Source: Guillardia theta CCMP2712
Lineage: Eukaryota; Protista; Cryptophyta
Direction: 5' to 3'
NCBI RefSeq assembly: GCF_000315625.1
Contig: NW_005434624.1
Location: forward strand, 514,477-578,476
Length of the DNA stretch: 64,000 nt
In this document: one piece after another, positions 5,075-56,850 of the stretch
Position numbering within the stretch: the first letter of the stretch is position 1
Layout of the letters: each line of letters opens with the position of its first letter
Program-made: the position numbers and the translations under genes
Notes under the pieces: generated by a model
What the model was told of the DNA's origin: nothing
What the model saw: only the letters and a program-made list of their open reading frames with translations
Database searches by the model: none

Positions 5075-5620
5075 ACACCGACGGTGACTGACAGACTCAG
5101 TGATAGCACATTGATCGGACCGCCGTGCAGTGCCTCGGATCAGCCGGGGGCCCCGGGCCCGGTAATCCGAGTCGTGCCGGGCCCGGGGGGGCGACCGTAC
5201 CGTGTACCTTACTTACTCTTTACTCAAACTTCCGTTAAGTTCAACTAGTACGCCGTCGGAAGTACTCGGGCGACGCCGCCGGCCGGCGACGCCGAGCCCC
5301 GCGCCGGCGGCCACCCTGACCCGCACGCCGCAGCCTGAGGACCTTGAGGACAGTGTCAGGGTCAAGCCTCCTCGACTCTCCTGATTGTCCTCGTACTGAT
5401 TTTTAACTTAACTTTGAGTAAAGAGAGCCGAGGGCCGGCCGTGCGGGTCAATTGGCGGCAACTTAACTTTCAACGGAGTAAAGAGGCGGCAACCGTGAAC
5501 GGCTGGGATCACTGAGCCTCAGGCTGGGTCAACGCTGCGCCCGAGTCGCTTTATCCGGGCCTACGATCATAAAGATCTCGTCCTCATGACGAGTCAGACC
5601 GTCATGAGTCCGAGACTCGA
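5075..5620. other. GC-rich, palindrome-dense intergenic island
   Basis: CCCGGG/GGGCCC/GAGTC/CAGTG-rich non-coding tract holding three copies of the dispersed TTAACTTTGAGTAAA element. Confidence 0.6.
5216..5483. repeat. Three copies of the dispersed ~55-nt element (5216-5252 minus, degenerate; 5360-5422 plus; 5460-5483 plus, degenerate)
   Basis: CTCCTGATTGTCCTCGTACTGATTTTTAACTTAACTTTGAGTAAA at 5378-5422; the two flanking copies each carry a 5-6 nt insertion. Confidence 0.75.
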
Positions 5621-5900
5621 GAGTTTCATCATGCTTCAAGTTCGTCTCTTGGTTTCATGTGATATGGCCAAGTTCATCATTATGTCGTAGAGCTCTACAC
5701 CATTCTTCCGTGGATCACAATCATCATCATCATCTCTATCTCTTCTGAGAGCGGCTGAATCATCACCAGAGTCCCTAGACACGTGAGCTGGTGTGAATGT
5801 AAGCACCCTTTCTTTACATAAAGATCATAGACAACTATTTTTCGAGATCACTCACCAACGGAGCGATTTCTGATAGTACTACAATGATTCAGCAATACTT

Positions 5901-6317
5901 CTATATCTTGCTGGTCACTAGACAGAGGTCGACTGGCTGAGCATTCGAGAAAAATATAACGGGATCCATATCAGTGGCATCCATGTACCACTCCAGCCAT
6001 GCCGTATCCCAGCAGACGGGAACTGGTGCTTCTCCTCTCCTCTGGCCATCAGTGCGCAATTCCTCCTTGTCCTTGTACTCGCGTTGTCTTGTCTGGGAGC
6101 TCGTGCCCTTGGTGTACGGCCAGCGCTGGATCCCGAGCCTCCGGCACGCAGCCTTGAAGCTCGTCAGGCACACCCCGAGCTGCTCGGCTGCCTCCTCTTG
6201 CCGGACGTGGAAGAGGCCCTGCAGAAGCTGAGCGTCGAGGGTGACCTCTCGCTGGAGGGTTGCTGGGGAGGTGTGTTTTCTTGGGCGGGGGACGATCTTG
6301 ACCTCATCGAGCTGCAT
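5901..6317 (-). CDS. RWP-RK domain transcription factor, copy 1 (138 aa, intronless)
   Basis: LQGLFHVRQEEAAEQLGVCLTSFKAACRRLGIQRWPY matches the RWP-RK domain; C-terminal WLEWYMDATDMDPV. Confidence 0.9.
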   Translation of the reverse strand: MQLDEVKIVPRPRKHTSPATLQREVTLDAQLLQGLFHVRQEEAAEQLGVCLTSFKAACRRLGIQRWPYTKGTSSQTRQREYKDKEELRTDGQRRGEAPVPVCWDTAWLEWYMDATDMDPVIFFSNAQPVDLCLVTSKI

Positions 6318-6990
6318 GTTGTATGCTGCAAGTGGATTGGGGTAGGAAGGGCAGAGATTGATTATCGGATGAAACAGGAAGTGAGGAATTCAAGGGAGGT
6401 GGGGGGCAGTTGTAGGGGGAAGAGCGGGGGAGCTCTCTGGAAAGAAGGGGAGCAAAACTGGAGGACTGTTTTGACGGTGTGTTATCAGCGAAAAGAAATA
6501 AAGAGCCTTTTATGAAGCGTTGAGAGTAGAGCATTTTCAGCCTTACAGGGCACGTCGCATCGGGTCATCAGTCATCAGAGTCGTCAGATCCGGGACGGGC
6601 CCAGTCGCAACTTTCCAAGTTCCGATTCACTGCACTGAGATCGCCGTGCGGCAGCGGAACTCAGATAGAACAGTGGTCCAATAAGGGTAAGAACCAGGGC
6701 TCGGACATTCCAAACATTCCAATCAAAGCTTGAAAGTCAGCGAGGCAGCTCTCATGCGCGGCATGCTTGGTTGGATCCTAGTAGCATCGGATTTCGTGTT
6801 ACAACAAATTTCAACATGTATGAGATTTAAAGAAGATACAACGAGCTGCGGATGCGGCAAAACTCTTAAGTCTACCAAAAGTTCTTAGGTTCCGGGAGCT
6901 CGTGAACAACTTGCCAGTTGCCTCGGAATCAGTGGCATCAAGGTAGTTGAATCGGCCGCAGAAGCACACCTGGCATACCCGAGTCTTTTT

Positions 6991-7641
6991 TTACATCAAG
7001 TAATCATACATGTCATTTCTAGCTTTGTGTAAAGGTGTCTGCAAGTAAGCATCATTGATGGCAAAGTTCCAAACCACTGGATCTGAGTCCGTCGCTTCCA
7101 TGTACCAAGCCAGCCACGCCGTGTCCCCGTGCCCCAGTACCGCCTCATCCTCCCTCCATCCCTCACCTCCTCCCTCTCTCACAGCAGCTTCTGGCAAGCT
7201 CTCCGCGTCTGCATGGTCATGTTCTCCGTGTCGTGGTGCTGAGACCTGGCCGAGCAACCAACCTGGTGTCCCTGCGCCTGAGCTCGATCTGTTGGCGTGA
7301 GACCAGTAGGCGCTGCTGTCTGCGAGTGGATCCGACGAGGCTGATGAAGGCGATGGCGATGATGCTGACTCTGAGCCTGTCTGAGACTCGCGGGATGGTA
7401 CGCCGGGTCTGCCGTTGCGCTGACTCATGCCCTTGGTGTACGGCCAGCGCTGGATCCCGAGCCTCCGGCACGCAGCCTTGAAGCTCGTCAGGCACACCCC
7501 GAGCTGCTCGGCTGCCTCCTCTTGCCGGACGTGGAAGAGGCCCTGCAGAAGCTGAGCGTCGAGGGTGACCTCTCGCTGGAGGGTTGCTGGGGAGGTGTGT
7601 TTTCTTGGGCGGGGGACGATCTTGACCTCATCGAGCTGCAT
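6991..7641 (-). CDS. RWP-RK domain transcription factor, copy 2 (intronless)
   Basis: Same RWP-RK domain as copy 1. Start placed at ATG 7641 (MQLDEV) by comparison with copies 1 and 3. C-terminal WLAWYMEATDSDPV. Confidence 0.9.
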   Translation of the reverse strand: MQLDEVKIVPRPRKHTSPATLQREVTLDAQLLQGLFHVRQEEAAEQLGVCLTSFKAACRRLGIQRWPYTKGMSQRNGRPGVPSRESQTGSESASSPSPSSASSDPLADSSAYWSHANRSSSGAGTPGWLLGQVSAPRHGEHDHADAESLPEAAVREGGGEGWREDEAVLGHGDTAWLAWYMEATDSDPVVWNFAINDAYLQTPLHKARNDMYDYLM

Positions 7642-8123
7642 GTTGAAGTTGGATAACGAGCGGAGTGGTGAGCAGTAGAAAATCAGTTGTAGTGATAGGG
7701 AATGCAGAAGCAAATCTTGAAGAGAGGTTGGAGAGAGACGTGGGTCTGCCGCGTGGAAGCAGGAACTTGGCAGCGCGGGATGAGCTTTCGATGGAGAAGT
7801 GCGGAAGAATTGGATTTTGGGTGTAGGGGAAAGTGAAACGTTTCAGTTTTGGCGGTCCGGATGCCACGAGGAGACGACAAGATGCAGAGCACAGTTTTTT
7901 GAGTACCCCTTCTTTTCTATGTAAATCAAGGGGTCATCAAGCGGTACGACATGTCAACCGGTAAGCTGACTTTTACTATTGGTAGATTTTCAGAATTGGA
8001 TGTAGTAAAACCCTCTTGCTTACAGTCATCTTGGCCGTGACGTCAATCTAGAGAATTCTGCAATGGAAGGTCATCACGGACTCCAGGATAGCGCCATGAG
8101 CTCGGATATGGGCCAGCAAACAC

Positions 8124-9080
8124 TTTACTCAAAGTTAAGTTAAAAATCAGTACGAGGCTAATCAGGAGATTGGCCATACGGCAAACCTTATCCGGCGCAT
8201 TGCTGTCCTCCAAACTTAACTGATACCTTCACTTAACTGCGCGCAGGCGCCATGCCAGGGATGTCGCCGTGGCCGCCGCCGAAGGAATGAGACGCATACC
8301 GGAACGCACCCGCGATGATGGCAGCGAAGGACAGGGAGGCCTTGAGCTGACGAAAGCTCCTGGACCGGATGCGTTTGCAAGTCGGATCACCTGAGACATC
8401 TTGCGAGGCCGAGAGACCATCCAGCGCTGCCGTTTCCTTGTTCACCGAGCGATCCGCCAGCCACCACAGAAAGAGCAACGCATCATCCTGCAAGAATCCA
8501 TCAGTGCTGGCGATGATGGGAAGGAAGGCCTTTGGCGGGACTTGCTGAGCATATGCATTACGATGCCCTCGGATCTTCCACTGTGCTGCTGCTTGCAGTT
8601 TTCTCCGAGCCTGGTCGGGGATCCCATCATTGTCAAAAACATGTGACATGCTGAAGTCCAGGATTAAGCCATACCATTGGACTCCAGTAGCCTGCAATTG
8701 CAGAAGTTCAAAATCCCCTGCGTGATGATCTTCAAGGCCATGTTGGGAAACGTTCTGCCTGGTGCCGGGAACGCATTGCACGTGGACGCGGCATCTAAAT
8801 CCTGAATCTTTGATGAGGGTACTGAGGACGGCATTGCATTTCTCATGCGCATCAGTGAATAACGGGCTGCGGTGCCTGCAGGTTGCCATGTGTGTGGTCC
8901 CCCCAGGGTGACAGAGAAGATCGTGGCATTTATCGCAGTGCGGCGAGAAGTCAATCGGCAGTCCATGAAGAAATTTGTCAGCGGCAGCCACCAAGCTGAT
9001 GGCCATAGTCAGTCACTTATCGGATTCCCGCGTATGCCACCGTTGGGTTTGGCATTCAGTGCAGCCCTGCCCGGCGGGTT
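8124..9080 (-). mobile_element. 5'-truncated non-LTR retrotransposon remnant with restriction-like endonuclease (CRE/R2-type) C-terminus and 3' UTR
   Basis: ORF 8233-9006 has a C-x2-C...H-x3-C knuckle (CDKC...HMATC), AHE at the RH[DN] position, GD...ILDFSMSH, QWKIRGH and FLPIIASTDG, in the order of RLE-clade elements. A GRAALNAKP segment upstream is out of frame. No RT domain remains. Confidence 0.7.
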
Positions 9081-9346
9081 GTGCGGAGGTTGGTTCTCTG
9101 ACTGTGCAACACTGCAGACAATGATCAAATAGTCGAAAGAACCTCGTCAACCCCAGAGTAAAAATCACCCGGGTCAGTGAGCTTCGGAAATCAACTAGTC
9201 CCGTGGAATGCATTCATCCGAGTTTCACCGTCACGGGGAGGCATCATTACAAAGCATTACTCGCCACATTCATTCAATCTGAACCGAGTCACAACCAATT
9301 ACTGCACAAAAGTAGATTCCTCTTTACCCCTAAAACAACGTGATAC

Positions 9347-10018
9347 TTATTTTGATGAAAACGCTCCATAAACACAAACACATCGGTGCTCCATTGGACC
9401 GCGAAAATAACATGAACGAAGTGGATCTTCAAGAATCGGGCCTTCGAATATAACTGGATCTGAGTCCGTCGCTTCCATGTACCAAGCCAGCCACGCCGTG
9501 TCCCCGTGCCCCAGTACCGCCTCATCCTCCCTCCATCCCTCACCTCCTCCCTCTCTCACAGCAGCTTCTGGCAAGCTCTCCGCGTCTGCATGGTCATGTT
9601 CTCCGTGTCGTGGTGCTGAGACCTGGCCGAGCAACCAACCTGGTGTCCCTGCGCCTGAGCTCGATCTGTTGGCGTGAGACCAGTAGGCGCTGCTGTCTGC
9701 GAGTGGATCCGACGAGGCTGATGAAGGCGATGGCGATGATGCTGACTCTGAGCCTGTCTGAGACTCGCGGGATGGTACGCCGGGTCTGCCGTTGCGCTGA
9801 CTCATGCCCTTGGTGTACGGCCAGCGCTGGATCCCGAGCCTCCGGCACGCAGCCTTGAAGCTCGTCAGGCACACCCCGAGCTGCTCGGCTGCCTCCTCTT
9901 GCCGGACGTGGAAGAGGCCCTGCAGAAGCTGAGCGTCGAGGGTGACCTCTCGCTGGAGGGTTGCTGGGGAGGTGTGTTTTCTTGGGCGGGGGACGATCTT
10001 GACCTCATCGAGCTGCAT
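9347..10018 (-). CDS. RWP-RK domain transcription factor, copy 3 (223 aa, intronless)
   Basis: Identical to copy 2 from the start codon to ...DSDPV, then a different tail. Confidence 0.9.
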   Translation of the reverse strand: MQLDEVKIVPRPRKHTSPATLQREVTLDAQLLQGLFHVRQEEAAEQLGVCLTSFKAACRRLGIQRWPYTKGMSQRNGRPGVPSRESQTGSESASSPSPSSASSDPLADSSAYWSHANRSSSGAGTPGWLLGQVSAPRHGEHDHADAESLPEAAVREGGGEGWREDEAVLGHGDTAWLAWYMEATDSDPVIFEGPILEDPLRSCYFRGPMEHRCVCVYGAFSSK

Positions 10019-10389
10019 GTTGTTATCTGTGGATGTACGTGATGCGTTCTGTCTGTGAGATTGGATGTAGGATTGGTTAAGTCGAATCAGGGGAAAGATA
10101 TTGGGGAAACAATCAATCGATGAAGTGGGGAAAGAGGAAAGAATGGGACCTTAACATAGGGGGCTGATAACAAGGGAAGGAAAAACCGCATCGTTCCAGA
10201 AAAATACTTTTGGTCCGGATGCCACTCTGACTCAGCAGATAGACAGGTCCCACTCACCCACCTAACTCAGTACCAGCTGTGCAACGAGAAATAGGTGGGT
10301 AGTCCAAGGGCCGACGGAATTGAGGGGTATTTTACCACAGGGTGGAAGACCTTTACTCCTGGCATCCAGAGCTTTCTCTGACTGGGTAA

Positions 10390-11105
10390 CTTACAGTAAC
10401 TTACCTCCGGTGATACCGTGACGTTCAATCAGTGCCAGATTCCGCTGTGCGCGCCCGGCCAGGCTAGCCTCGGAGCGCGGTGGCGCTCTGACGGCCGAAG
10501 TTTACTCAAAGTTAAGTTAAAGATCTCAGTTCGAGAACAAGCCTCAGTGTCAGTGAATCCGAGGCCGGCGAGTCGGAGACTCTCAGCCTGGCCCGGTGAG
10601 TCGACTACCGTGAGTCCGGCGGCGGCGAGGCCCTGAGGCTCCGGGGCGGCCTGGGAGGCTTGACCCGGGGCAGCCTGCTCTGTCGCACAGCCTGCCACTG
10701 CCACTGCTGCCGCCGGCGGCCCCCGGGCCCACTGCCAGCGCTGGACCGTACGGTACCCCGTTTGAAAATTCCCGGAGTCCGGCGCCGCGGGCCGGGCCCC
10801 GCGCGGCACCACTGGCATCACCCGCCGGGCCCGGGCGCCGCCCGCGGCCCGGCCGGCCGCCGGGCAGCGCGCCGCCGCACTGAGTGCCGCACGCGGCGCT
10901 GGCGCCAGTGCGGCATGTGATGTACGGTGCAACTGAGTGACCCGGCGCCGCGGCGCCGCGCGCCACCAACTGAGGCCCGAGACGCACTCAGCGGCCGCTG
11001 ATACCAGAATCGCGGCCCCGGGGCGAGCGGCTGAGTGCTGAGCCGCCGCCGCGGCCGGCGGCCGGGTAGATGATGCCCCCGGGCCCTGCCGATGCCCGGC
11101 CCGGC
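10390..11105. other. GC-rich intergenic island with dispersed-element copy at 10501-10540 (minus)
   Basis: TTTACTCAAAGTTAAGTTAAAGATCTCAGTTCGAGAACAA inside a CCGGGCCCGG-rich tract. Confidence 0.65.
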
Positions 11106-11332
11106 TAAGAGTGGGGATGATGTCCCAATAATCGGCATGGTCGGATTGAAGTGAACGAGCGGGCGAGGGGTAAGAGCGTGTGCTGGAGATGCTGAAGGCT
11201 GAGGAGGAGGATCATGGGTGAGTGCGTTGATACTCTTGACCTTGTCTATCCAGCACGAAGTGAGTACAAGTAAGCAAGAACTGTCGAAATCCAATCATGC
11301 ATGAGAGATTGGCAGGTGATAGGAAGCGCACC

Positions 11333-12963
11333 ATGGAGTGGAAGGATGGAATTGCAGGGGCCATTTCTGGTACTCGAATGTCTGACAACATTGAATAGTA
11401 TTCAGTGATTTGTTCGTACAGGAGTTGCGACTCGATGTTGTGTAGCTCCTTTGGATGTCATCAAAATCCGCTTGCAGCTACAGGTGGGACGCTATCTCAG
11501 CTGGGACCTCCTTGATTGACTTGTGCTTGTGATAGACCAATTGCCAAGGCTCTAGCAGAGATTATCGAGGGTTTCTAGGGACATTTCAGGTGATTTCGAT
11601 ACAGTAAAAGCCTCGAATGCTTACAGAGTGTTGGGACAGACGATAGTTCGCAGGGAAGGAGTAAGTCAATTGCGAGACATCCGGGCGGGATGTTCACATG
11701 TGTGCAAGGTTGTTGCACTGTGGAAGGGCAATCTCGCTGCAGAGTTCCTGTGGGGAGGGTACATGGGCACACAGTTTCTGGCCTATAGAAGCTTACAGGT
11801 CAGTAGGGAGCGGCTTTATTCTAGGGCATGTGAAGAAGTTGAGTCAGAATGCTATTCATCATCATACTTTCATGCATGGAGGAGGGAGAAACAATGAACA
11901 TGCATCTCAGGCACAAGATACGAGGCTGAATGATGGCAGCAAGGTATTCAGTGTTTCTGGTTCATTCAGTCTGCGCTGATGTTCCTGTCATTGCCCCTGA
12001 CAAGGTTTTGCGTGATTTGATCTGCGGTGGACTTGCTGGAGGGTTTGCGACCATGACAACGTTACTTTGACTGAAGCTGTGCACACTGTCTTACTCTGTA
12101 ATTAGGTACCCTTTTGATCTCGTGAGAACTCGGCTTGCAGCCCAGACAGAACCCAAGGCACATGCCTTGATGCGTTATGATTGTGCTAAGCTTTAGCAGA
12201 TTTACCATGGCGTCTTGGATGCATTTTATCGCATTTTAATCAGTGAGCGAATGCGAGGATTTTACCGGGGTAATACCTTAGCCTTGCCACTTCTGTAGTA
12301 CTTTGTGACGTGTTGATGTCAGGATTGGCTCCTAGTCTTATTCAAGTCATGCCATACATGGGGATTCAAGTGCTTCCTATCCCTAAACGTTGATTTCCTT
12401 TTCTCACTGTTGCCGGCTAGTTCTCCATCTACGAGGCTCTCAAGCGTTTCATCTCCACTCAAACCAAGGAAGGATCGCAAGGTGACACTCATGGGAGGCT
12501 CATTGGTGTCGCGAAGTTAATTTCTACTAGGATGGAAGGAGAGCATGTTCTGCGGGTATAATGCGTCGGATGTTGGCCAGCCAATGGACGCCTCACACCA
12601 CACTTGCAACAGATGCGTCGCCGGGAGCATCTCGAAAATTTCTACCCTCCCTCTGGACGTTACGAAGAAACGGATGCAGGCAACAGGATCATCCCTCTCA
12701 CGATAGACTCAATTGTCACAGGTCATGGGCACGACCATGCTTGCAGCTTCACAGGGTCGAAAGATATCTTCTATGCGAGAGGTTGTACGAGGTATCTTGC
12801 GCGACGAAGGATGGCAAGGGTTCTTCCGTGGTGGTCTCCCCAGGTCCTCGTGCTTGGGCTGATGTAAAGCACGTGACATGATCTTGTAAACAGCGTGATG
12901 AAAACAGCGCTATCATCGGGGTTGTCATTCGCGATCTACGAGCTCATGCTCAAGATCCTTTGA
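11333..12963 (+). CDS. Mitochondrial carrier (SLC25) protein, thiamine pyrophosphate carrier-like, multi-exon
   Basis: Three P-x-D-x-x-[KR]-x-R motifs read across introns (APLDVIKIRLQ, YPFDLVRTRLA, LPLDVTKKRMQ), plus LWKGNLAAEFLWGGY, GFYRG and GFFRG; stop at 12961-12963. Confidence 0.85.
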
Positions 12964-13087
12964 CAAAGTTGAGGCAAGTCATCACTATAAATCCTACAGT
13001 GCTCAGAGACAACCAGGACTGCTTGTGAGCAGACGCATTTGATTAACATTAGAATCACACAAGAACGATCCCATCATGACATTCTTC

Positions 13088-13466
13088 TTAGTAAACACCG
13101 TAGCCATGCACATTGTACTGCAAACCAAGTCAGCCTTGGCAACGAAACACGAAAGTCTACGCACATTTGGCCAGCTAGACCAGTCCACAGGAGTCCATGT
13201 CGTGTGAGCCTGTGGGTTAAAGGAGCCAGAAGAAGGGTCGGACTCATAGGGATGGATGGTCACGGCTGGATTTCCTTCGCCCTGCAGGTAGGCGCCCCAG
13301 GGCTCGTCAGCCTTGTACCAGTTGCCGCCCATTGTGGTATCGAACCTGGAGGAGGAAGTCAGCAGGAGAAGACGAGTTCCACATCATGCGCTTACATGGA
13401 GTAGGGATCGTTCCTGCCTCCGTTGGGAGATGCGTACAGCATCGCGCCTCTGAAAAACGGGAGCAT
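13088..13466 (-). CDS. Small G/P/W/Y-rich hypothetical protein, probably 3 exons
   Basis: MLPFFRGAMLYASPNGGRNDPYS, then ...MGGNWYKADEPWGAYLQGEGNP...VDWSSWPN, then YNVHGYGVY-stop, joined by short GT-AG introns. Confidence 0.5.
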
Positions 13467-13544
13467 GATGGCTCTTCGTTCCGCCGAGCGAGTCCACACG
13501 CATCAAATGTATCCTTGGAGATATCAATGTTCTGCGGCCTTGAG

Positions 13545-13990
13545 CCAGACGGCCGTCCGACCGGGTGCCGGGCCCGGCCAGATCCGCCGGTGCCACTTTT
13601 TAACTTAACTTTGAGTAAATCAGCCTTGTGACTCCGTACCCCGGTGGGCCCGGGACTACTCCCGCAGGCGGATGGAATGTAGGGTAGGGTCCTAGAACTT
13701 TGGCAGCCGTTGGAATCGGATGCGACATGCCATGATGGCGAGCGCTGAGTGTGGCACTGAAAGGATGAGGCTCAGCGGCCGCTACTTGTCGGACTCTCGG
13801 AGGCTCAGTTGATGATCGCTGCCAGTGACCCCGATACTAATCCGATCTAGAGTCTGTCTTTGCCTTGTCATAGTACGTGCGGCTTGCGGTTAGCTGACTC
13901 TTAGAACTGATCACCGTCGGTGACGGAAGATCGGAAGATGATGATCATTGTGTGAAAGTCAGGCCAGTGTGAGCCTTGAGTGCCGTGAAG
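13545..13990. other. GC-rich intergenic island with truncated dispersed-element copy at 13597-13619 (plus)
   Basis: TTTTTAACTTAACTTTGAGTAAA between CCGGGCCCGG-type palindromes. Confidence 0.6.
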
Positions 13991-14092
13991 ACGCCCCACC
14001 GTGCAGTCCATCAAGTTCCTGGCAACCGAAACATTCTGATTTGTTCTGATTGCTTCTGATTCAGTTGTTCAACTTCGGAAGTAGTTGCGGCG

Positions 14093-23405: not shown

Positions 23406-26331
<2,926 letters not shown>

Positions 26332-36489: not shown

Positions 36490-36795
36490 ATTCCAGAGCT
36501 AGGCAATTTCATTTTTTCGAATTCGATTTTTTCCCCGCCACCGGGTCGGGGCCCGTCGGCCGCGGGGCCGGTCACAGGCTGGGCCCGGCCCGGCCCGGCT
36601 CCGACACTGGCAAGCTGCCGCCGGGCGGCCATTGGGTAGCGGCCTGGAGTACGGTCCGGCTCGCCGTCACGGTTCACTTTGTTCTCTTCTCGCCGTTTGG
36701 CTTGGCACGGCGGCGACAGTCACGGTGATGGCTGCCTGGTCAAGCCGCTCCTGATTGTCCTCGTACTGATTTTTAAGGCTTAACTTTGAGTAAAG
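36490..36795. other. GC-rich intergenic island ending in a near-full dispersed-element copy (36737-36794, plus)
   Basis: TGGTCAAGCCGCTCCTGATTGTCCTCGTACTGATTTTTAAGGCTTAACTTTGAGTAAA. Confidence 0.75.
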
Positions 36796-37588: not shown

Positions 37589-39948
37589 ATGAATCAGAAT
37601 CAGATCTCGAATGACGAGCTGAAGGAGAGGGAGGAGGATGCAAGGATAAGGAAGGGGCTGATAAAAGCAATCAACAGAGGAGATGAGGTCAAAGTGAGAG
37701 GACTGGCCGTGAGTGCAGGACCAGAGCGACTGAAGCAGATGCATAGCGTAGGCGTGGCTCAAGGCACCACGATAGTCAGCGGGTGTAGGGACAAAACATT
37801 GAGGGTGTGGGACCTGGAGGAGATGAAGGAGAAGGCTTGTCTCCAAGGTCACATATGGGACGTAACCAGCGTGGCGATCAGCAGAGATGGGAAGACGGCA
37901 GTCAGCGCGAGTTGGGACAACACTTTGATTGTGTGGGACCTGGAGAAGATGAACGAGAAGGCTTGTCTCCAAGGTCACGAATCGTGGGTAAACAGTGTGG
38001 CGATCAGCGAGGACGGGAGGACGGCAGTCAGCGCGAGTAACGACTCGTCAGTGATTGTGTGGGACCTGGAAGAGATGAAGGAGAAGGCTTGTCTCTATGA
38101 CGTTGAATGTGGCTGTGTGCTGAGCGTGGCGATCAGCGAGGACGGGAAGACGGCAGTCAGTGCGTGTACTGATGAGATTTTGAGGGTGTGGGACCTGGAG
38201 GAGATGAAGGAGAAGGCTTATCTCCAAGGTGATGAATGGGAAACGCGAAGCGTGGTGATCAGCAGAGATGGGAAGACGGCAGTCAGCGGGGGCGCAAACA
38301 AGAAACTGATTGTGTGGGACCTGGAGGAGATGAAGGAGAAGGCTTATCTCCAAGGTCACGAATCATGTGTAAACAGCGTGGCGATCAGCGAGGACGGGAA
38401 GACTGCAGTCAGCGGGAGCGGGGACAAGACAGTGAGGGTGTGGGACCTGGAGGAGATGAAGGAGAAGGCTTGTTTCCAAGGTCAAAGTAGCGCTGTTACG
38501 AGTGTGTCTTGGAGATCTGTCAAGGGGTCGATGGGCTCAGCACTGCACGTGGCAGCGGCGCGAGGGGTCTGGCCTATCTGTGAGAGGCTGCTGGAAGTAG
38601 GCGGGGGAGAGCTCGGCGAGCTGCGAGACTCGATGGGACGAACAGCGGCGAAGGTAGCGCGAGAGAGACAGGACGAGGAGCTGGCGAGCAAGATAGAGGA
38701 CTGGATGCGGCGGCTATGGAGTGGGGAGCTTTTGATAGAGGCACTGCAAGACAAAGTCAAGGCAAAGCACGAGGCAATGGAGAGAGAGGAGAGGGAACTG
38801 AAGGAGCACAAGCAGAAGCAGCAGACGGAGCGAGAAGGGAAGGAAAGGCAGGAGAGAGAGTCCGAGCAATGCAAGCAGCATGAAGTGTTTTTTGAGGTTC
38901 TGTTTGTGATCGTATGAGATTCGATGTGACAGGTGGATTTTTCTGTCTGCAGGTAGGAAGCACTCGATCGGTTGCCTACAACAGCTTCGTCGTCAGCCGT
39001 CAGATTGGCTCAAGCTCCTTCAAGCTCGTCTACAAGGCTCGATGGCAGCAGCTGCAGGGCAGCAGCGCAGACGTGGCCATCCTGCGACTCCGAGGCAGCG
39101 GACTCACCGAGAAGAGGGACGAGCTCGAGCAGAAGGCGAAGACCTTCCAGCAGCTAGGCCGTCACCCAAACCTCCTCCGCCTCCTCGCCATCACCGTCGA
39201 GCCAAGCTCTGGCGACTTCTGCCTGGTGACTGAGTTGGCTTCCAAGGGTTCTCTTGATGAGATCTTGTACAAATTTGCCGTGGAGGAGGAGACGTTGGGT
39301 CTACTGGTGCAGCTGCAGGTGGTGAGACAGATCTGTGACGGGATGGTGCAGCTCTCGTTGCACGAGGTCGTACACCGGGGCCTGGGCGCGAGGAACGTGC
39401 TGGTCTTCAGTCTGGATGCGCAGGACCACCTTGGTGTCAGTGTCAAGATAGCGGACTACGCAGGATGGACTGCTCAGCCGATGCGATGGATGGCGCCAGA
39501 GAGCATCGAGAGAAGACAGTTCTCCCAGAAGAGCGACGTGTGGGCTTTCGGGCTGACCATGTGGGAGGTCTGGACTTACGGCCAAATCCCTTATGGGTCA
39601 ACTATCACAGACGATGCGCTTGTAGGGTCGAAGGTGGTAGACGGAGAGCGACCTGCAGCACCTGCGTCATGCCCTGCAGTAGTGTATACAATCATGCAGG
39701 AGTGCTGGAAGAAGGAGGAGGAGGAGCGGCCAAGCTTCAGCGAATTACAGCGAAAGCTCCAGGAGCGATACGACGAGGCCGTGCAAGGGCGCGGGCAGCA
39801 ATGCGTCATCTGCATGGATCACAGCGCTGAATGGGCGCTGATCCCCTGCGGTCACAAGTGTCTCTGCGAGTCTTGCAAGGAAGGAGCGACAGCCAGGAAG
39901 TGTCCGATGTGTCGCTCGAGCCCCACGAGCATCTACAAGATTTACTGA
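37589..39948 (+). CDS. Ankyrin / WD40-repeat / ankyrin / coiled-coil / tyrosine-kinase-like pseudokinase / RING protein (~767 aa; exons 37589-38896 and 38953-39948)
   Basis: Six VWDLEEMKEKA-type WD40 units; SALHVAAARG and MGRTAAKVA ankyrin motifs; kinase fold with PMRWMAPES and SDVWAFG; C3HC4 RING CVICMD...PCGHKCLCESC...CPMCR. A phase-0 GT-AG intron at 38897-38952 joins the two ORFs. Confidence 0.85.
37765..38510 (+). repeat. Tandem 126-bp coding repeats (WD40 units)
   Basis: TGGGACCTGGA at 37808, 37934, 38060, 38189, 38315 and 38441 (spacing 126,126,129,126,126). Confidence 0.92.
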
Positions 39949-40599: not shown

Positions 40600-41075
40600 T
40601 CTAAGTTAATCAGTCTAGCCGGCACTGCGGCAAGCTCCACTGTACCGCAGCCACGGTGTCGCCGGTCGGACTCTGGGAGGCTGAGTCACAGCAGGTTCAG
40701 TTGGCCGTACAAGTTGTTCCATGTCAGGCCGGGCTGCTGGGGTTCGTGGATCATCCGATCCCCCGGCCGGTCAGCCGCTGATACCGTGGCTCGGACTGCC
40801 TGAAGATGCACTTTGAGTAAACTGACTGATGATGCCATTCGGCCCGAGCCTCTGACGGGGCGGCGGCAGCGGCACGACGGTGGCCGGCGGCATACCAGCA
40901 TGATGCCGTGACGGCCTTCCGCGGGGTGCTGCTACACCAGTTTGAACAGCGGTGATCAGACTGCCTTGTCCTCTCCCAGTGACTCATGCCAGCAGCTCGA
41001 TCCGAGTCACGCCGCCCACACTGGGCCGGCCATGCGCCTGGCGGTCATCGAGCTTCAGCCGTAGCCAGGGGCCGG
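40600..41075. other. GC-rich intergenic island with a 12-nt terminal remnant of the dispersed element (40810-40821)
   Basis: ACTTTGAGTAAA within a GAGTC/CAGTG/CCGG-rich tract. Confidence 0.5.
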
Positions 41076-43224: not shown

Positions 43225-43725
43225 CGGACTCGTCACACTCACGTGGCACTGTGACTTGCTGACACTTTGTGACGCCGTGACACCACGACCGGGTGCACTC
43301 AGGCTGGCCCGTCACGGTCACGTGGAACTTTGGAGCTTCGGCCCTTGAAACGCTCGTTCGGACGGTCGTGATGGTACCAATCTTCCTTTACTCAAAGTTA
43401 AGTTAAGATCAGTACCCGGTCGGACGGACCGTACCATCACGACCCGGTCCGACGGTCACTGAGTCATGGCAGTGTCAGGGTCCGGTCCCACGGAGTCCCC
43501 GGCCCTGGGGTCCCGGCCCCGAACCTGGCTCTCAGTCGTATCGGACGGTACCGTACTGACCCCGGTTGGCCGCAACGCCGGGCCGCTGCTCCGAGTCACG
43601 ACTGGCCGGGCAGTGAGTCAAATCAACCGTTGGCAAGTCAGTCGTACGGTAAACTTGAAACTTCCGGTCAGTCAACCAGTTCGGCCGGGCCCCGCCGCCG
43701 TACGGTGCCCGGCCCGCCCCAAGGA
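43225..43725. other. GC-rich intergenic island with dispersed-element copy at 43387-43415 (minus)
   Basis: TTTACTCAAAGTTAAGTTAAGATCAGTAC. Confidence 0.65.
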
Positions 43726-43759
43726 GGAAGGGCTTTAGTCAGGAGAGCAGGACGAGCAA

Positions 43760-46876
<3,117 letters not shown>

Positions 46877-48348: not shown

Positions 48349-48384
<36 letters not shown>

Positions 48385-48385
48385 C

Positions 48386-48420
<35 letters not shown>

Positions 48421-49437
48421 CAGCAGCAGCAGCATTTCTCCGCAAAACAGCGCACAACCTCAATATCCCGGGTGAACAAAACTCCATCCAGCTCCGCATT
48501 GGCCCACACGATCCACTTTGCGGCGTCTGCTCGCTTCTCGGGGGTATTGCTCTCCCCGTACTTGTCCGACAGGTACAGCAAGATGGCGCCGCTCTCAAAC
48601 AGCTCAACCTTATCGTCACGCAAGCCAGGAATCTACATGAAGTGACATAAGATGAAAACAACATTTCCTTCCACACCCATTCCCCCTCCCCTTCCCTTCC
48701 TCCTCCTCCTCTTCCTCCTCCTCCTCCTCCTCCTCCTCCTCCTCCTCCTCCTCCTCATAGTTGACATCATTGCACATTTTGAATGGTTTCCTCTATCATC
48801 AACAGCATACTTGACTATCACAATCACCTCCCCTATCACTTGCAATATCGCCAGCATCATCTAATCCATGACAATCTCTATCGTTGCCAACCTTGCCGAA
48901 CGGGTTCGGGTTCGACGCGCGATCCTCACTGATTATGGCAGGATTAGTCCAGCATACACAGCTACTTCCCCACAGGAGGTTGAAAAGGTCCAGAGCAAGC
49001 TACCTGTGTGTGTACTGCTTGTTGATTTCGACGAGGTACCACTCGATCAGTGGTGACCTGCTGTTTCTGTTTCCGTACAGGGTGACCTCTGAGGTCAACT
49101 GAAGAGCAGCAGGAGCATGTACAGCAGTCCTTGCATGCCTCGTGACGGGCAGGCTACGTTCGTGTGCACGCGGCTTCAGGCCGAGATGGTTGACCGGGAC
49201 GTTGAACGCAGACACCTGAAGGGCATTCAGAAGTGAAAAGGATGGAAGAGAACGAAAGGAGGATCGCACACACCCACTCCTGTACCTCGCTCGCCTCCGC
49301 TTCTGTTACCGGCCACCCTTCCTCTCCTCCTCCTTCCTTCTCTCTGTATCTCTCCCCCTCCATCTAGACATCATCGTCCAAGTTTCCTCCATCACCGTCT
49401 GCATCGCCGCCATCGCTGCGATCGTCGCCTTGAGCAT
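47266..49437 (-). CDS. Glutathione S-transferase with probable plastid-targeting presequence, multi-exon
   Basis: VTLYGNRNSRSPLIEWYL, NPFGK/IPGLRD, LFESGAILLYLSDKYG, FLVGNQFSVADVA; N-terminal extension containing VSA-FN. Confidence 0.88.
48349..48433. repeat. (AGCAGG)n/(AGC)n intronic microsatellite
   Basis: Direct reading. Confidence 0.9.
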
Positions 49438-49990
49438 GGTATTCCCTTGTATGTCGTCGGAAGGACCACATCCCCTTCCTGACCAGTTTCGGGGACTGGA
49501 CTCCCACTACTTTCTCTAGAATACCCTCGTAAAGATGTACCCCACCTGGTCTATATGGATCTTTCGCAGACCAATGGACCGGTATCTGGACCTTGACTAC
49601 CCCCCTACTGCACTTTTCCCAGCGCGATGTGGCGTGTCGAATTTCCGAACTCTATGCGTTTGAGGGAGGAGGAGAAGGGGAGGAGGAGGAGGAGGAGGAG
49701 GAGGAGGAGGAGAAGGAGGAGGAGGAGGAGGGGAGGAGAGAGGCAGGGAAGGGACAGAGGGAAGGATAGACATCTGAAGGGAGTACCGACTGAAGGAGGA
49801 GGGCAGAGCAAAACAAAAAGGAAGAGGACAGGACAGCAAGGGGAATTTGGAACGAAGGAAAAGAAAACGAGAAACTTAAGAGTAAGAGAAGGAGAAAGAG
49901 AAGGAGGAGAACTAAGAGGCGATGCAAGATAAGGACGAGAGGTGCAAGAGAGAAACAGGGGACAAGAAAAATACCTTGCAGAGGAAAGGC

Positions 49991-52478
49991 ATGACTTCGG
50001 ATAAGGACTGTCGTCCAAATGCTTTCGTGATCTGAACGTTGCGATCTCAGATGGTGGATGCCGTGCCGAAGAGCAAACTTCTGCTCTCCATAGAGTGCAA
50101 GTGAGGAGATAAGCTCACACCTGCTGTTGTCACTCACAATTGCCGTGTTGTGTTCCAGAGGGCTGCAGAACAAAGATGTCTTATCCAAGTCTGACCCAAT
50201 GTGTGTGGTGAGCTGGCAACCATGAGTCTAACGCCCCCCCTCCTAGCCCTTGACATGTGGTCACAGGTTCATAGCAAAGACCCGCAAGGTCGCTGGGTCG
50301 AGGTGAAGAGAGCGTGATGGTGATGGGAGGGGATAAGAGCGTTGTGGTTCAGGTCGCGAGGACTGAAGTCATACAGAACAACCTCAACCCCAAGTAGGGG
50401 AGGAGCAGGGGAGAGGAGCCGTCGGTTGACTCTGTCGGCAGGTTCTCGACCAAGATCGAGATCGACTTTCTGTTCGAGACCGTGCAGAATGTCAAGTTCA
50501 CAGTGTACGATATCGACTCGCCCAAGAAGAGCCTGGACCAGCAAGACTTCCTGGGATTCCACGAGACGACGCTAGGGAAGATCGTAGGGTCGAAGGGATC
50601 GTGCCTGATCGAGGCACTTGCAAGCTCTAAGGGAGCCAACGACAAGAGGTATGGCACCATCAAGATCCTTGCGGAGGAGGTACAGGGAGCGAACGACTCT
50701 CTCCGCTTCATCCTGAGTGGGACCAAACTAGCGACAAAGGACTGGCTGGGAAAGGGGGACAAGTACGTGAGGATCAAGAGGAAGCGGAAGGATGGGGCGC
50801 TGGATGTGGTGTATGAGACTGAGGTCATCAAGAACTCTAAGGACCCTGTCTGGCACGGGATCGAAATCCCCATTCAGAAGCTCAACCTGGGACAGATGGA
50901 CATGCCGATGGTCTTCGAGCTGTGGGACTGGAACGCCATGTCGAGCCACGACTTCATGGGCCAGGTGACCTGCACCGTGCAGGACCTGCTGAAAGGGACC
51001 GGTCCAGCATCTTTCCCTGTCAAGAAGAACAAGGGAAACGCCCAGGACACCAAAGATCGAGGACTCCTCAACATTACCCACGTCCAGGTCCGAGAGCATG
51101 CTCTGACCTGCTGACTTCCTGACCTGTCTGCCCAGCTGGTACACCGGCCGACGTTCTTCGAGTACGTGGCTGGGGGATGCCGCATCGACATCCTGATGGC
51201 CGTTGACTTCACTGCGTCCAACCAGGACCCGCTCAAGCCAGACTCTCTCCACTACATGAACCCGTCGGGCTTCAACCAGTACCAGCTCGCCATCGCGTCT
51301 GTTGGGGAGATCCTCGAGAAGTACAGCTCCAGCAAGCAGTTCGGGTGCTTCGGGTTCGGCGCGAAGCTGCCGGATGGTCGGGTGTCCCACTGTTTCGCCC
51401 TCAACGGCAAGGCGGATCGCCCGGAGGTCCAGGGGGTCCAGGGGATCCTCGATGCGTATGCCAAGTGTCTCAGCAGCGTCGTGCTGTACGGGCCGACCAA
51501 CTTCGCTGACATCATCACCATGGCTAACGACAAGTGCAAGAGGATCAAGCCGGGCAGCCAGGAGTACGTCGTCTTGCTGATCATCACCGACGGAGAGATC
51601 ACCGACATGGACAACACGATCGAGAAGATTATCGACTCCTGCTCCAGCCCTCTCTCCATCGTCATTGTCGGGGTCGGTGACGCAGACTTCGGCAAGATGG
51701 AGGAGCTCGATGGGGACGATCGGGTGCTGCGGTCCTCTGTATCTGGCAGGCAGGTCACCCGGGACATAGTGCAGTTCGTCGCCTTCAGGGAGTGCAACAA
51801 GAACGGAGCTGAGCTCACCAGCCGCGTCCTCGCTGAAATCCCCTCCCAGCTCACCTCCTACATGATCGCCAACAACATCCAGCCCCGTCCTCGTCCCTCT
51901 GTGGACTCAGACTGGAACCAGGTCCGTTTTCCTGTTGCTCCTTGCTCTACCTTTATTGTCCTTACTCTCTCCTCTCCTCCACTGACCTCTCCTCCTCTGA
52001 CCTCTCCTCTCTCCTCTCCTCCACTGACTTCTCCTCTCTCCTCTCCTCCACTGACCTCTCCTCTCTCCTCTCCTCCACTGACCTCTCCTCTCTCCACTCC
52101 TCCACTGACCTCTCCTCTCTCCTCTCCTCCTCTGACCTCTCCTCTCTCCTCTCTCCTCTCCTCCTCTGACCTCTCCTCCTCTGACCTCTCCTCTCTCCTC
52201 TTCTCCTCTGACCTCTCCTCCTCTGACCTCTCCTCGTCTGACCTCTTCTCTTCTCGCCTCCACTTCGTGACTTCTCTGCGCAGGTGCAGGCAGGCATGCA
52301 GAATCTCAACATAGGAGGAGGCGGTGGCTCAGCCCCTCCCCCTCCCCCCCCCGCATACTCTGCGCTGCCACCAGGATGGGAGGAGCGAGTCGACCAGAGC
52401 AGTGGCAGAGCTTACTATGTCAACCATCAGACACAGGTAGGAGGAGCAGATGATATGACCCAAGAGGGGGGGTTGATC

Positions 52479-52520
<42 letters not shown>

Positions 52521-52680
52521 TTAGTGGTGGTGATGATGACGATGACGACGAAGATGATGACGGCGGTAGTGGTGGTGGTAGTGGTGGTGACGATGATGAC
52601 TATTATGATGATGATGGAGGCGGAGAAGGGTAATCTTAACTTGATGTCTACAGACGACACAATGGGAACGACCAGTTTGA
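49991..52680 (+). CDS. Copine (C2-C2-VWA) with C-terminal Pro-rich linker and WW domain, multi-exon; start uncertain
   Basis: KDVLSKSDPMCV, FETVQNVKFTVYDID, AVDFTASN, SLHYM, YGPTNFA, LLIITDGEI, RDIVQFV; terminal LPPGWEERVDQSSGRAYYVNHQTQ/TTQWERPV-stop. Confidence 0.9.
51966..52250. repeat. Intronic minisatellite (~27-bp CT-rich unit containing CTGAC)
   Basis: Repeated CTCTCCTCTCCTCCACTGACCTCTC units. Confidence 0.85.
52479..52520. repeat. (ATG)n intronic microsatellite
   Basis: Direct reading. Confidence 0.9.
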
Positions 52681-53434
52681 TTGTAGTTTACAACTTGACA
52701 ACATCACCGGGTTGGCTTCCTCTTACATCAAATCTTAATTTAGGCACTAGAGCCTCTTAATTAGAAATACAATTACTTCAATTCAAGCCCTCAACATTGT
52801 CCAGTCGTGGTGAGAAGAAATATGGAGCTGACCAAAACTCATCCTCCTCAATTTCATCCTCCTTGTCCTCCTCGTTCTCCTCCTCGTCCTCCTCCTCGTC
52901 CTCCTCCTCGTCCTCCTCCTCCCTCCTTGCTCTTCCCCTCCTCCTCCTCCTTGTGTTCTCCCTTCCCTTTCCGAGTTCCTCGCGTACCCCCGGCCCTACC
53001 TCCTCCTTGTTTCCCTTATTTCCCTCACACCACTCGGACTGCGGCTGCAAGGAAAATATGGAGGAGAGGGAGGAGAGGCGAGGAGAGCTCAGAGCAGCGA
53101 TGTCAAACAGAAGAAGAGAAAGTATGAGGAGAGAAGAGAGGTAGGAACGAGAAGAACAAGGACAAGAAGAAAAAACAAGGATAATATGGGCTTGAAGAAT
53201 GAAAGAGAGAGGAAGGGATTGTTTTCCTCTCTAGACAGCAACTGTCTCTGACTTCTCTCAGTCAGTTTTTTTCGCTCATCAGCCACCAGCTGATCGTTTG
53301 GCTCAGGAATCCTTAGCAACTTCTCAGCTCTCACTCAGACATGCTGAGCCTCGCAACCTTTCACGCCTGACGAGGCGTGCGGGCACCAGCATGTCATAAA
53401 AGCAGGAGGCAAGAGAGGAGGGGAACCGTTGAAG

Positions 53435-55546
53435 ATGGAGCGAGGAGAGTATCGAGCAATCTTTGGGATAGGGAAGCAGACGAGGAGCAGGCTCAAGACA
53501 AGCCCCAACAGAGCTGAGCCCTCGGACTCTGCTCCCCCCGTTCCCAAACGAAGTCACCAGCACAAGACACTCGACTCTACCTCCGTCGCCTCTCACTCCG
53601 CCTCCCGCAAGTGCAGGTGGGACAAGTCGTTAGTTGAATCCCGTCCATGATGTCATGCTCCTCCTGTCAAGGTTGATCTCTGCAAGACTAGAACGTATTC
53701 TCCTGCAGGCATGGGCAGGTACCTCCCTCCTCGTCCCCTTTCTCTACCTCTACCTCTTTCTCTACCTCTACCTCTTCTCGTTCTCCCTTCCTCTGCCTCT
53801 CCCTCTGAGCTGTGTAAAACCTCTCACTATCACTCAAGATGTTCAAGCTAACGGACCTCTGATGACGATCCTCAAGGGTCTACCTACTGCTTGCCTGTGA
53901 CCAACATGACATGCAAGGAGCAGGGACCCTGCTGGAGTCCTGGAGCATCGTCAATGACGAGCTGCTACAAGAAGCTCTCGATGATGCTGAGATCTCACAA
54001 CAACAGCAGCAGATCAAACTGCAGAACCTTGACTTGATGCTTGCGCATGTACTCCAGTCTCTTGCCTTCCTCTCCCCCCGTCTTGTTTCAGGCAGCTCAG
54101 ACATATTTCAGATGGAGGCTACTGTTCCCTGCGTTGAGAAGTCACTGGAGGCGGTTGATGCGAACCTGACGAGCCGAGCAGCAAAGAGGTCAGAATGAAG
54201 TCGCTTCTCTACTGAGTATCTAACCAGCAGCAGGACGAGGGATGTTGGAGTCGATGCGGGGTGAGGGAAGCAGAGATGGTTGTAGAGGCATGACTGTGTT
54301 GTATGTAGACAAGAGAGCTCTCTTGAAGACTCGCGAACAAACGCGAAGATCATCGAGAAGATGGAGGAGGTGGAGGATGTTGATGGCTACGGAACAACCC
54401 TCATAATGTCTTGGCAGCTGATGGAGAGAAACCTGATGATGGAAGAGATGGACGACGACAGCGAAGAGTTCGTTCCTCCAGCTCATCTCAGTGACAAGAT
54501 CGAGAAGATCATGCGAGCGATCGGGAAGAAGCAGGTGCTGCGACATGGCGTGTATGTTGATGTAGCTGACATTCTCTGCAAGGCAACTGAAGTCAACGCT
54601 CAGGAAGAGGACAGCGAAAGCGATACGCAGAAAGAGGAGAAGGCAACCCTGGATCGAATGAAGTCAATCTTGGAGCAGAAGGTGGAAGCTCTGACGTTAG
54701 AGAATGTCACCCTGTGAGTTGTCACGTCCAAACGTCTCCCCTGCGATCTAAGAGTGATGTGCAGGAAGACGAGCATGGCGAGAGGTTCGAGAGCAACACG
54801 TGATGTGAACCATCTCATTGTGATTCATTGGCAGCATCCGAGCAGAACGAGGATACGGTCAGGAGGTTGCAGAACAAGATCGACCAGCTTATGGCGTAGA
54901 GCATGTCTTGCCCTGCCACCCTGTCACGTTGACTTGATTGCAGCGAAAGGTATGCGGATGACAAGATACAACACGCCAGGCTGGAGACCATCAAGGTGGG
55001 CAAGAGGCCTCCTGTCTGTGTGCTCGCTAAACCTCTACCATGGCACAGGAGCTGCAGAGTATGCTCAAGTTCAACACAGCCTTCGAGACCAAGAAAAGCT
55101 CCCTTTTCTCCCAAGTCGAGGATATGATGAGCGCTAGAGCCAGTGAACAATCCTAATCCTCCCCTTTCTTCCTCCTCTACCCTCTCCCCTCTCTTGTCCT
55201 ATCCTCTCTGTTCCTCCCTTGCTCACTCTTCCTCTCTCCCCGCGCTCTCTCTCCTCCCCTCCCCTCCCCCTCGCTCTGGATGAGGGGAGAGGATTTTAAA
55301 ACACCACCCCCCACCCCCCCTCCCTCTCTCTCGTCTTCCCCTCTGATATCTTTCCTTCTTCCAGCCTCGGACTCGCAGCCGGACTTGCAGCTGCGCATCG
55401 ACCAGCTTGAGTCTCTCAGGCAGGCGGACATGGAGTACATCGCAGAGCTCGAGGACAAGGTCATCTTCCAGAAGAAGAAGATTTTACAGCTCGAGTCGCT
55501 CCTCCTGCAGCCAAGGGCACCGGATGAAAGTCAGAGCATGCGATGA
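53435..55546 (+). CDS. Hypothetical coiled-coil protein, multi-exon
   Basis: E/Q/K-rich exons (LDRMKSILEQKVEALTLEN; LQLRIDQLESLRQADMEYIAELEDK) separated by short introns. Confidence 0.4.
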
Positions 55547-55593
55547 GACAGGCATGCTTTTTCCTTCCATCACGACTGATGTTAATCAATAAT

Positions 55594-56409
55594 TCAACCT
55601 CCTTCCTCCGCCGCCTCCTCGCAGATCGCCTCCTCCTGCCTCTGCTCCGCTCCCTCTGTCTCCTCCAACCACTCCTTCCAGTCTCTCTCCACCGACTCGC
55701 GCAAGGCGGCGCTGCCTATTCCGCGATGCTCCACCTTCACCTGCCACAAGAGGGCCTGAAGGACGAGCGCCGTTGCCACTGCGACATTCAGCGACTGAAC
55801 GAAGCCGAAGGTCGGGATGAAGACTCGCTTTGAGGAGGCGTCAAGGATTGCCTGCGAGACTCCAGCCGTCTCCTCTCCCATCACGAGGGCGATGCCTTCC
55901 TGCGGCAGCTCCACTTGCTCCCCCGACCTCAACGACACGGCGCCTGCCCCCAAGTCTGTGGACCAGATCTGTCTCCCTTCCTCCCTAGGGCAAGGTCGAA
56001 GTGAGAAGCACGATGAGAAGAGGAGGTTTGTCAACTCTCATCTCAACCTGATGGCTTTCAAGAGCTCGTGCTCGTCCTGGAAGAAGCGCTGGCTGAGGTA
56101 GCGATCAGCTCCTCTGCTGATGGAGCGCATCTTGCTCCGAATCTTCTTGGTGGAGGACGAGAAGGCTCCCGTGTAGTGGGGGGGGAGGATACTCCAGATC
56201 ACCTGCACGCCAAGAGCATCGCAGGTGCGGAAGATGGAGGAGATGTTCCCGACGTCTCTGATCCGATCAAGCACTAGTATGATCTTGTCGGTTCTCCATG
56301 ATAAAACATCCCTCGGGTCCCTCCTCTTGTAGTCGCTGCAATTAGCTGACGAGGTCGGTCGGTTGGTGCTCTGGGCCATCAACGGATCAAACTGTGCAGG
56401 GAACATCAT
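55594..56409 (-). CDS. SpoU/TrmH-family RNA 2'-O-methyltransferase (one short intron near 56000-56045)
   Basis: LVLDRIRDVGNISSIFRTCDALG, LVMGEETAGVS and IPTFGFVQSLNVAVA are the SPOUT motifs 1-3. Confidence 0.9.
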
Positions 56410-56614
56410 TGAACGAACTTGATGGAGTGCGCTTTACAAAGGATAGAAATAAAGTTCACCTGCCTTCTTCCTTCTCCTCAAAATCTCCCATTTACCCTAC
56501 CTACCCTACCCTCCTGTACTCTACTCTTTCCCAGGCTCCCATCGCCTTCCCTCCCCTCCCCTCCTCTCCCTCCCAGCACTCGCTCCCATCTTCGATGCAT
56601 CTGCATCCCACGTA

Positions 56615-56850
56615 CCTGCGGCCGCCCAGCCGAGCTCAGTGCCACTGCGGCAGTGGTGACCCGGCGCCGTTCCCGGGGCCTCTGACGTCGCCGGGCCCGC
56701 CGGGTGCCGTCACGGTACCAACTGGCATAAATTCGGACTGGGTTTTTATCAGGCGGCCCGGGCTGTAAGTGACCAACGACCTCCGTAAATCTTCTTTTGC
56801 TCAAAGTTAAGTTAAAATCAGTACGAGGACAAATCACTGAGGTCGTGACA
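56615..56850. other. GC-rich intergenic island with dispersed-element copy at 56796-56836 (minus)
   Basis: TTTGCTCAAAGTTAAGTTAAAATCAGTACGAGGACAAATCA. Confidence 0.7.

Follow-up and report, generated by a model that had tools for sequence, protein, structure and literature searches.

The R2 elements of Bombyx mori (R2Bm) and the zebra finch (R2Tg; PDB 8gh6, 9dou, 9nl3) are long interspersed nuclear elements (LINEs) whose single open reading frame (ORF) codes for a reverse transcriptase (RT), followed by a CCHC motif and a restriction-like endonuclease (RLE) of the PD-(D/E)XK type. They have no poly(A) tail, prime their complementary DNA (cDNA) precisely at the 3' end and show variable 5' junctions. 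The RLE group also includes CRE, SLACS, CZAR and NeSL-1, found in protists and nematodes, and insertion at a specific sequence is usual in this group but not universal. HERO and Rex6 are dispersed RLE LINEs without strict site specificity. The R2 RT is said, in the work of Bibillo and Eickbush, to perform end-to-end template jumping. Here, we analysed a 64,000-nt stretch of the genome of the cryptophyte Guillardia theta CCMP2712 (contig NW_005434624.1, positions 514,477 to 578,476; hereafter called the window), in which a motif of approximately 55 nt recurs. This motif is the 3'-terminal part of a tail-less, autonomous retrotransposon with a single ORF and without long terminal repeats (non-LTR), which most likely inserts through target-primed reverse transcription (TPRT) in the manner of R2, with synthesis usually aborted early. 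The element shares with R2 the single ORF and its domain order, the lack of poly(A), variable 5' junctions and, as we infer, precise 3' priming, and R2 proteins are its best matches in both sequence and fold. Unlike R2, its copies have diverse flanks and are not in 28S ribosomal DNA, a dispersed distribution that it has in common with HERO and Rex6.

The complete element is 4348 nt long and consists of a 135-nt 5' untranslated region (UTR), a single 1348-aa ORF and a 165-nt 3' UTR, without poly(A) tail or terminal repeats. The motif forms the final part of the 3' UTR, ending in …TTTTTAACTTAACTTTGAGTAAA. BLAST searches with the whole element identified four full-length copies that are 98-100% identical, each with the motif inside its 3' UTR, in agreement with the initial annotation, which had regarded the motif as the 3' end of a tail-less non-LTR element. 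Two of these copies are as follows:

L049:2652-6999, full-length copy that ends in the motif
L050:2574-6916, full-length copy that ends in the motif

The other two also terminate in the motif. The borders of the element, TTTTGAAATGGCGTGTA at the start and GAGTAAA followed by A or G at the end, are found in independent loci with unrelated flanks outside, and the intact 1348-aa ORF was read at two loci. The window ORF at 8233-9006(-), to which these full-length copies are related, represents the C-terminus of this multi-copy protein; a protein search of the genome with its product yielded 153 matches, the best of them 88% identical, in open frames of up to 1350 residues. The element is young, and its young copies suggest that it is apparently active. 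Part of its protein is 100% identical to GUITHDRAFT_110080 (P0002) of G. theta CCMP2712, and several annotated 'hypothetical proteins' of this organism (P0002, P0153-P0157, P0016 and P0071) are fragments of this or sister LINE ORFs. The tails end in AGTAAA (e.g. at 5398-5422 in the window), which is a variant poly(A) signal known in animals.

The window harbours ten copies of the motif, given here with window positions and, where BLAST aligned them, element coordinates:

5219-5252 (-), diverged tail copy of ~34 nt with indels, found by a 13-mer scan with 1 mismatch and sequence inspection, below the reach of BLAST
5349-5422 (+), tail copy of 74 nt, element nt 4274-4347, BLAST 98.6% identity
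5460-5483 (+), diverged tail copy of ~24 nt with a 5-nt insertion and GGCGGC flanking both sides, a weak match seen by eye, below the reach of BLAST
8124-9002 (-; 8124-8169 and 8182-9002), LINE copy truncated on its 5' side and belonging to an older subfamily, element nt 3398-4233 and 4302-4347, BLAST 89.8% and 93.5%
10501-10540 (-), tail copy of 40 nt, element nt 4310-4347, BLAST 90%
13599-13619 (+), tail copy of 21 nt, element nt 4327-4347, BLAST 100%
36682-36794 (+), diverged tail copy of ~113 nt, element nt 4248-4347, BLAST 76.5%
40810-40821 (+), tail copy of 12 nt, ACTTTGAGTAAA, found by the 13-mer scan and by eye, below the reach of BLAST
43387-43415 (-), tail copy of 29-30 nt, element nt 4318-4347, BLAST 96.7%
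56795-56832 (-), tail copy of 38-50 nt with the end GAGCAAA, element nt 4310-4348, BLAST 94.9%

Aligned at their 3' sides, these copies share the end …AACTTTGAGTAAA, mostly with G or A as the next base, after which they diverge completely. On their 5' sides, unrelated sequence is joined at differing points. BLAST analysis of the full element against the window showed that every tail copy matched stops at element nt 4347/4348. The ten sites with a shared 3' end (…CTTTGAGTAAA) and varied starts that had been listed initially were all recovered by the 13-mer scan, inspection and BLAST. A chance origin of the motif repeats is excluded: with up to 3 mismatches, a 21-mer of the motif has five matches in the window and none in 100 shuffles, and by simple base odds the exact 12-mer of the copy at 40810-40821 is expected 0.008 times in the window.

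Three details of the first description had to be amended. The ladder of truncated copies does not end at ~60 nt but continues to the full length of 4348 nt. The motif had been placed ~55 nt past the stop codon of the window ORF, and a 57-nt gap is indeed present (8176-8233). This distance is, however, peculiar to the copy at 8124-9002, which comprises a remnant of the CCHC and RLE C-terminus (ORF 8233-9006) and is so short because of internal deletions in its 3' UTR, the intact 3' UTR being 165 nt long. Finally, one scar per 6 kb is only a local density. Averaged over the genome, the exact 13-mer occurs approximately once in 50 kb, and the window is a hot spot, with six exact 13-mers vs 1.27 expected (Poisson P = 0.002). 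The window contains an assembly gap (23488-23587). The copies nearest to it are ~10 kb and 13 kb away, and BLAST detected no LINE homology beside it; therefore, the finding holds whether or not the sequence is continuous there, and the gap affects the local density estimate only. A listed ORF that crosses these 100 N (23413-24309) is an artefact of reading N, and the sequence to the right of the gap (23588-23680) has many C and G homopolymer runs, resembling low-quality read ends.

We determined the genome-wide extent of truncation over the assembly of 87.1 Mb in 669 contigs, using patterns that pool subfamilies and allow one mismatch, except for the last 13-mer, which was exact. The counts by distance from the 3' end are as follows:

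last 13 nt, exact: 1733 copies (reversed control, 3)
last 20 nt, at most one mismatch: 1670 copies (reversed control, 0)
nt 21-41 from the 3' end: 724 copies
nt 57-77 from the 3' end: 316 copies
approximately nt 105-125 from the 3' end: 301 copies
C-terminal coding region (protein search): on the order of 100-150 copies
full length: 4 copies

Five pattern counts and 41 non-redundant copies, taken from 30 random loci and the window, define the distribution of the 5' ends. Copies are present on all large contigs. Every long BLAST match covering the 3' region finishes at nt 4347/4348, with starts ranging from nt 1 to 4319, and the 41 short copies show the same one-sided truncation. In these matches and copies, truncation thus affects the 5' side only, and not both ends equally, the outcome that would have spoken against the initial annotation. 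The lengths are continuous from 12 to 54 nt and beyond, 34 of the 41 sampled copies having at most 54 nt, and ~80% of the copies that keep the last 20 nt reach no further than ~57-77 nt, another difference from R2. Counts and sampled lengths together therefore describe a biphasic curve, in which approximately four-fifths of the insertions are no longer than ~55 nt, whereas the remainder often extend much further. The fold of the 165-nt 3' UTR is not significant (z = -1.6), and hence no structural cause can be assigned to the stop at 20-55 nt.

The search for target-site duplications (TSDs), which had also been proposed, was positive. Exact TSDs of at least 6 bp (6-8 bp) adjoin both ends in seven of the 41 truncated copies, as opposed to none of the 41 controls taken 200 nt away (Fisher P = 0.006); examples are GAATACAG, AAAGTATT, GGAAGGG and GTTCAAG. 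Zero to four extra bases lie between GAGTAAA and the duplication. In the flanks of 45 copies, positions +1 to +3 after the tail are biased to G-A-A, for which heterogeneity of the RNA end, the addition of untemplated bases or a slight preference for certain targets may account. Apart from this bias the flanks are unrelated, and insertion is therefore not site-specific. The copies are clustered, since 18 of 96 neighbour gaps are shorter than 1 kb vs 1.9 expected (P = 6e-13). The 18 close pairs (six convergent, five divergent and seven tandem) have the orientations of random pairing; in the window, the copies at 5219-5252(-) and 5349-5422(+) form a divergent pair. A composite at locus L024(-) (~1430-1545; G000:C2:818650-818732) contains two tails in tandem, one of 21 nt and the other of 44 nt, together with a filler of 20 nt within a single 9-bp TSD, TAACCAAGT, and thus represents a single insertion event with template jumping. 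At L011/L012 (G000:C2:123629-123835), a palindrome of ~190 bp carries the same 21-nt tail on both arms. As the arms also share ~80 nt upstream and ~35 nt downstream of the tail, this locus is an inverted segmental duplication rather than two insertions.

The RT domain of the 1348-aa protein scores just above the threshold of Pfam RVT_1 (33.1 bits, cut-off 29.6). In a sequence search of the PDB, the sole match was the Bombyx R2 RT, aligned to residues 594-735 (E = 0.03) with very low identity. HMMER retrieved 717 relatives, and a word-based protein search returned two near-identical matches only. The database relatives, from G. theta, Cafeteria and metagenomes, carry no clade names, and an Atlas search gave only unnamed RVT_1 clusters. 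The C-terminus contains CX2C...H...C, followed by GD...(17-20 aa)...D(F/V)(S/T)...KI..HR..Y, and these CCHC and D...D...K motifs are conserved over three G. theta families, including a 38%-identical sister and a third family. An AlphaFold (AF2) model of the last 270 residues was built from a 13-row alignment. Its seven top structural matches are all R2 proteins (Z 8.2-9.8 over 152-159 residues), and it aligns to the CCHC and RLE region of R2, residues ~929-1107, while other PD-(D/E)XK nucleases reach Z scores of at most 6.7. The C-terminus thus has the fold of an R2-like RLE of the PD-(D/E)XK type, which bears out the RLE-type assignment first given to the window ORF. The RLE domain is not recognisable in Pfam, where the 257-aa window ORF matched nothing. 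In Pfam analyses of the 1348-aa ORF, an APE endonuclease was not detected (no Exo_endo_phos match at E up to 0.1). Neither a zinc finger nor a Myb domain was detected at the N-terminus, and this result sets the protein apart from R2.

A number of observations weigh against an R2-like element with frequently aborted TPRT. The survival curve is approximate, because the patterns counted pool subfamilies and tolerate one mismatch, and some internal 3' UTR fragments have no exact tail nearby, so that not all fragments fit pure 5' truncation. A clear TSD is present in only approximately one-fifth of the copies, and none of the window copies has one by the automatic test; in RLE elements, the absence of a TSD in most copies is common. 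The confidence of the C-terminal model is middling (predicted local distance difference test, pLDDT, 62), and the Foldseek E-values are weak (0.006-0.09). Lastly, RT motif C reads YADN (L049:4860-4880, ORF residues ~692-696) in place of the canonical YADD, which also distinguishes the protein from R2. (Y/F)ADN is found as well in the G. theta sister families and in 40 of the 47 database relatives with a recognisable motif C (e.g. P0004, P0013, P0039, P0042 and P0155). Some viral RNA polymerases function with GDN. Our literature search found no paper on YADN reverse transcriptases.

The 17-nt spliced leader (SL) of G. theta has been published (PMC5619915). It bears on the other interpretation initially considered, that the motif is a host sequence, i.e. 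an SL or another small-RNA gene, targeted by the element in the way of CRE, SLACS or NeSL. The host does use SL trans-splicing, as do those of that group, the SL is joined to LINE sequence at two loci (L034 and L052), and the 3' UTR of the element includes GGGTCAAG, which resembles the 3' end of the SL. Yet the SL, CTCGGCGGCTGGTCAAG, with 23 exact copies in the genome, is a different sequence unrelated to the motif. Its genes have their own promoter and a conserved intron (a TATA box upstream, TATA…TAA, then CTCGGCGGCTGGTCAAG, then gtgtatatcaccccaacctttttga with an Sm site). In every full-length copy the motif sits within the element's own 3' UTR, and beyond the G-A-A bias the sequence that follows GAGTAAA is unrelated between copies. 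Furthermore, none of the 45 tail copies examined adjoins an SL, the family being dispersed and not found in SL genes, contrary to CRE, SLACS, CZAR and NeSL-1, and Rfam and transfer RNA (tRNA) scans of the window found no small RNA genes and no rRNA. A host target is thus extremely unlikely. The short copies might alternatively belong to a short interspersed nuclear element (SINE) or another non-autonomous partner that shares the LINE tail. Six of 41 copies begin within 1 nt of each other (43-44 nt, at CCTGATTG), which could hint at a discrete short RNA, but the lengths spread continuously and the tRNA scan of the window found no tRNA-like sequence. The 190-nt 'element' apparent in five longer copies is the LINE 3' UTR plus the end of the ORF. 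The 5' flanks of the 41 copies have no common head, and we therefore consider a SINE, which had been suggested initially, highly unlikely.

Could the ladder result from decay, the copies having been inserted longer and then shortened by deletion? Internal deletions do occur in the copy at 8124-9002 and in L020, and most copies have no detectable TSD. Nevertheless, TSDs of 5-8 bp directly adjoin the truncated 5' ends of copies of 36-160 nt, the majority of the short copies hardly differ from the young consensus, and a 3' end preserved so regularly is not what deletion would be expected to leave. Given their own duplications and this near-identity, the short copies are better explained by synthesis that aborted soon after its start than by later deletion, and decay is a very unlikely origin of the ladder. 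As for a terminal inverted repeat of a DNA transposon or miniature inverted-repeat transposable element, divergent pairs such as 5219(-)/5422(+) and the inverted arrangement of 11 of the 18 close pairs are what it would predict; its probability is nonetheless negligible, as the orientations fit random pairing, most copies are solitary and the motif runs into an RT-encoding element on one side only. An introner or 3' splice-site element, brought to mind by the branch-point-like TACTGAT and the AG, was rejected on the same grounds, since only one side of the motif leads into LINE sequence and the pair orientations are random.

The two SL-bearing loci look like retro-chimeras rather than targeted insertions as in the CRE group, with no SL promoter and, in one case, a junction at a cryptic acceptor inside the LINE. 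At L034:1100-1520(-) (G000:C8 ~120700-121127), a complete 17-nt SL is joined directly to LINE nt ~3913, and in intact copies a good acceptor (…cctcttgcag/GACGATGCG) precedes the junction position. The locus has neither SL intron nor SL promoter, and its 3' end is devoid of the last ~20 nt of the tail. It is most simply read as a retrocopy of a trans-spliced LINE RNA, comparable to the dinoflagellate SL-relic retrogenes that Slamovits and Keeling reportedly described in 2008, in which trans-spliced RNA returned to DNA with its SL. At L052:7600-7700(-) (G000:C19 ~800600-800700), the SL exon and the initial 20 nt of its intron, reaching to the Sm site, are fused to the 5' end of the 38%-identical sister LINE, which has a 1403-aa ORF. 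There is no TATA box or SL promoter upstream of the SL part, and an inverted copy of ~80 nt of the element's own 5' end follows its 3' UTR. The likeliest reading is a template-switch chimera formed by a jump of the RT from LINE RNA onto SL RNA, although an insertion into an SL gene is an alternative reading, in which this one locus of the sister family, adjoining SL RNA sequence, would resemble the CRE group. The sister 3' UTR does not end in the motif, and the tail is therefore family-specific. L052 and the composite L024 are comparable to the L1/U6 chimeric retrocopies reported, we understand, by Buzdin et al., in which the LINE RT is said to copy a second RNA after a template switch. The G. 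theta cases differ from these and from the dinoflagellate ones in that only two SL loci were seen, with no host-mRNA retrogene shown. In RNA reads and contigs, tail-bearing sequences occur with many different flanks, and the local genes of the window are barely covered; at 5420-5424, reads and contigs derived from other copies stop matching the window.

The anatomy of the element fits R2-style TPRT, and the most likely course of insertion is the following. The ORF protein would recognise its own 3' UTR, and its RLE domain would nick DNA at many differing sites. Priming from the nick would start the cDNA precisely where the element RNA ends, without poly(A) and with zero to four extra junction bases. 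Synthesis would mostly abort within the first 20-55 nt, leaving the very short copies, and the short cDNA would be linked with the DNA upstream, in some cases once the RT had switched to a different template. More speculatively, and with considerable doubt, the family could belong to an undescribed R2-like clade with (Y/F)ADN, whose hyper-abortive, jump-prone polymerase would write scars of 20-55 nt, composites and SL-RNA/LINE chimeras and might, in the way suggested for dinoflagellates, carry SL-tagged RNAs back into the genome of the cryptomonad.

Some genes of the window lie close to copies. Two tandem RWP-RK ORFs, at 6991-7713(-) and 9347-10018(-), each have a same-strand tail copy 400-480 nt upstream, and the 880-nt LINE fragment is situated between them. 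A tail copy is found ~800 nt upstream of a WD40 ORF (37589-38917, +). These same-strand positions suggested SL relics at gene 5' ends, a possibility ruled out by the published SL and the full element. The WD40 ORF overlaps a kinase-RING ORF (38914-39948) by 4 nt (ATGA, 38914-38917), and both may belong to a single gene interrupted by an intron or a frameshift.

Our literature search found no paper on G. theta LINEs, nor was the family found described elsewhere. Three of its traits are unusual: its copies are truncated extremely early, its insertions are dispersed although it is an RLE element, and its polymerase motif is a variant one. Its identification explains a short motif that the G. theta reference genome contains in high copy number (at least 1,700), whose scars might otherwise be taken for regulatory elements, spliced leaders or SINEs, and it flags annotated hypothetical proteins such as GUITHDRAFT_110080 as fragments of retrotransposon ORFs. 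To the R2-like elements it adds a young, apparently active and non-site-specific member with an unusual polymerase motif. Its rich record of early-aborted and template-jumped insertions would be useful for studying the passage from initiation to elongation in TPRT, and the two SL/LINE chimeras provide direct evidence, at the level of DNA, for the reverse transcription of SL-bearing RNAs into the G. theta genome.

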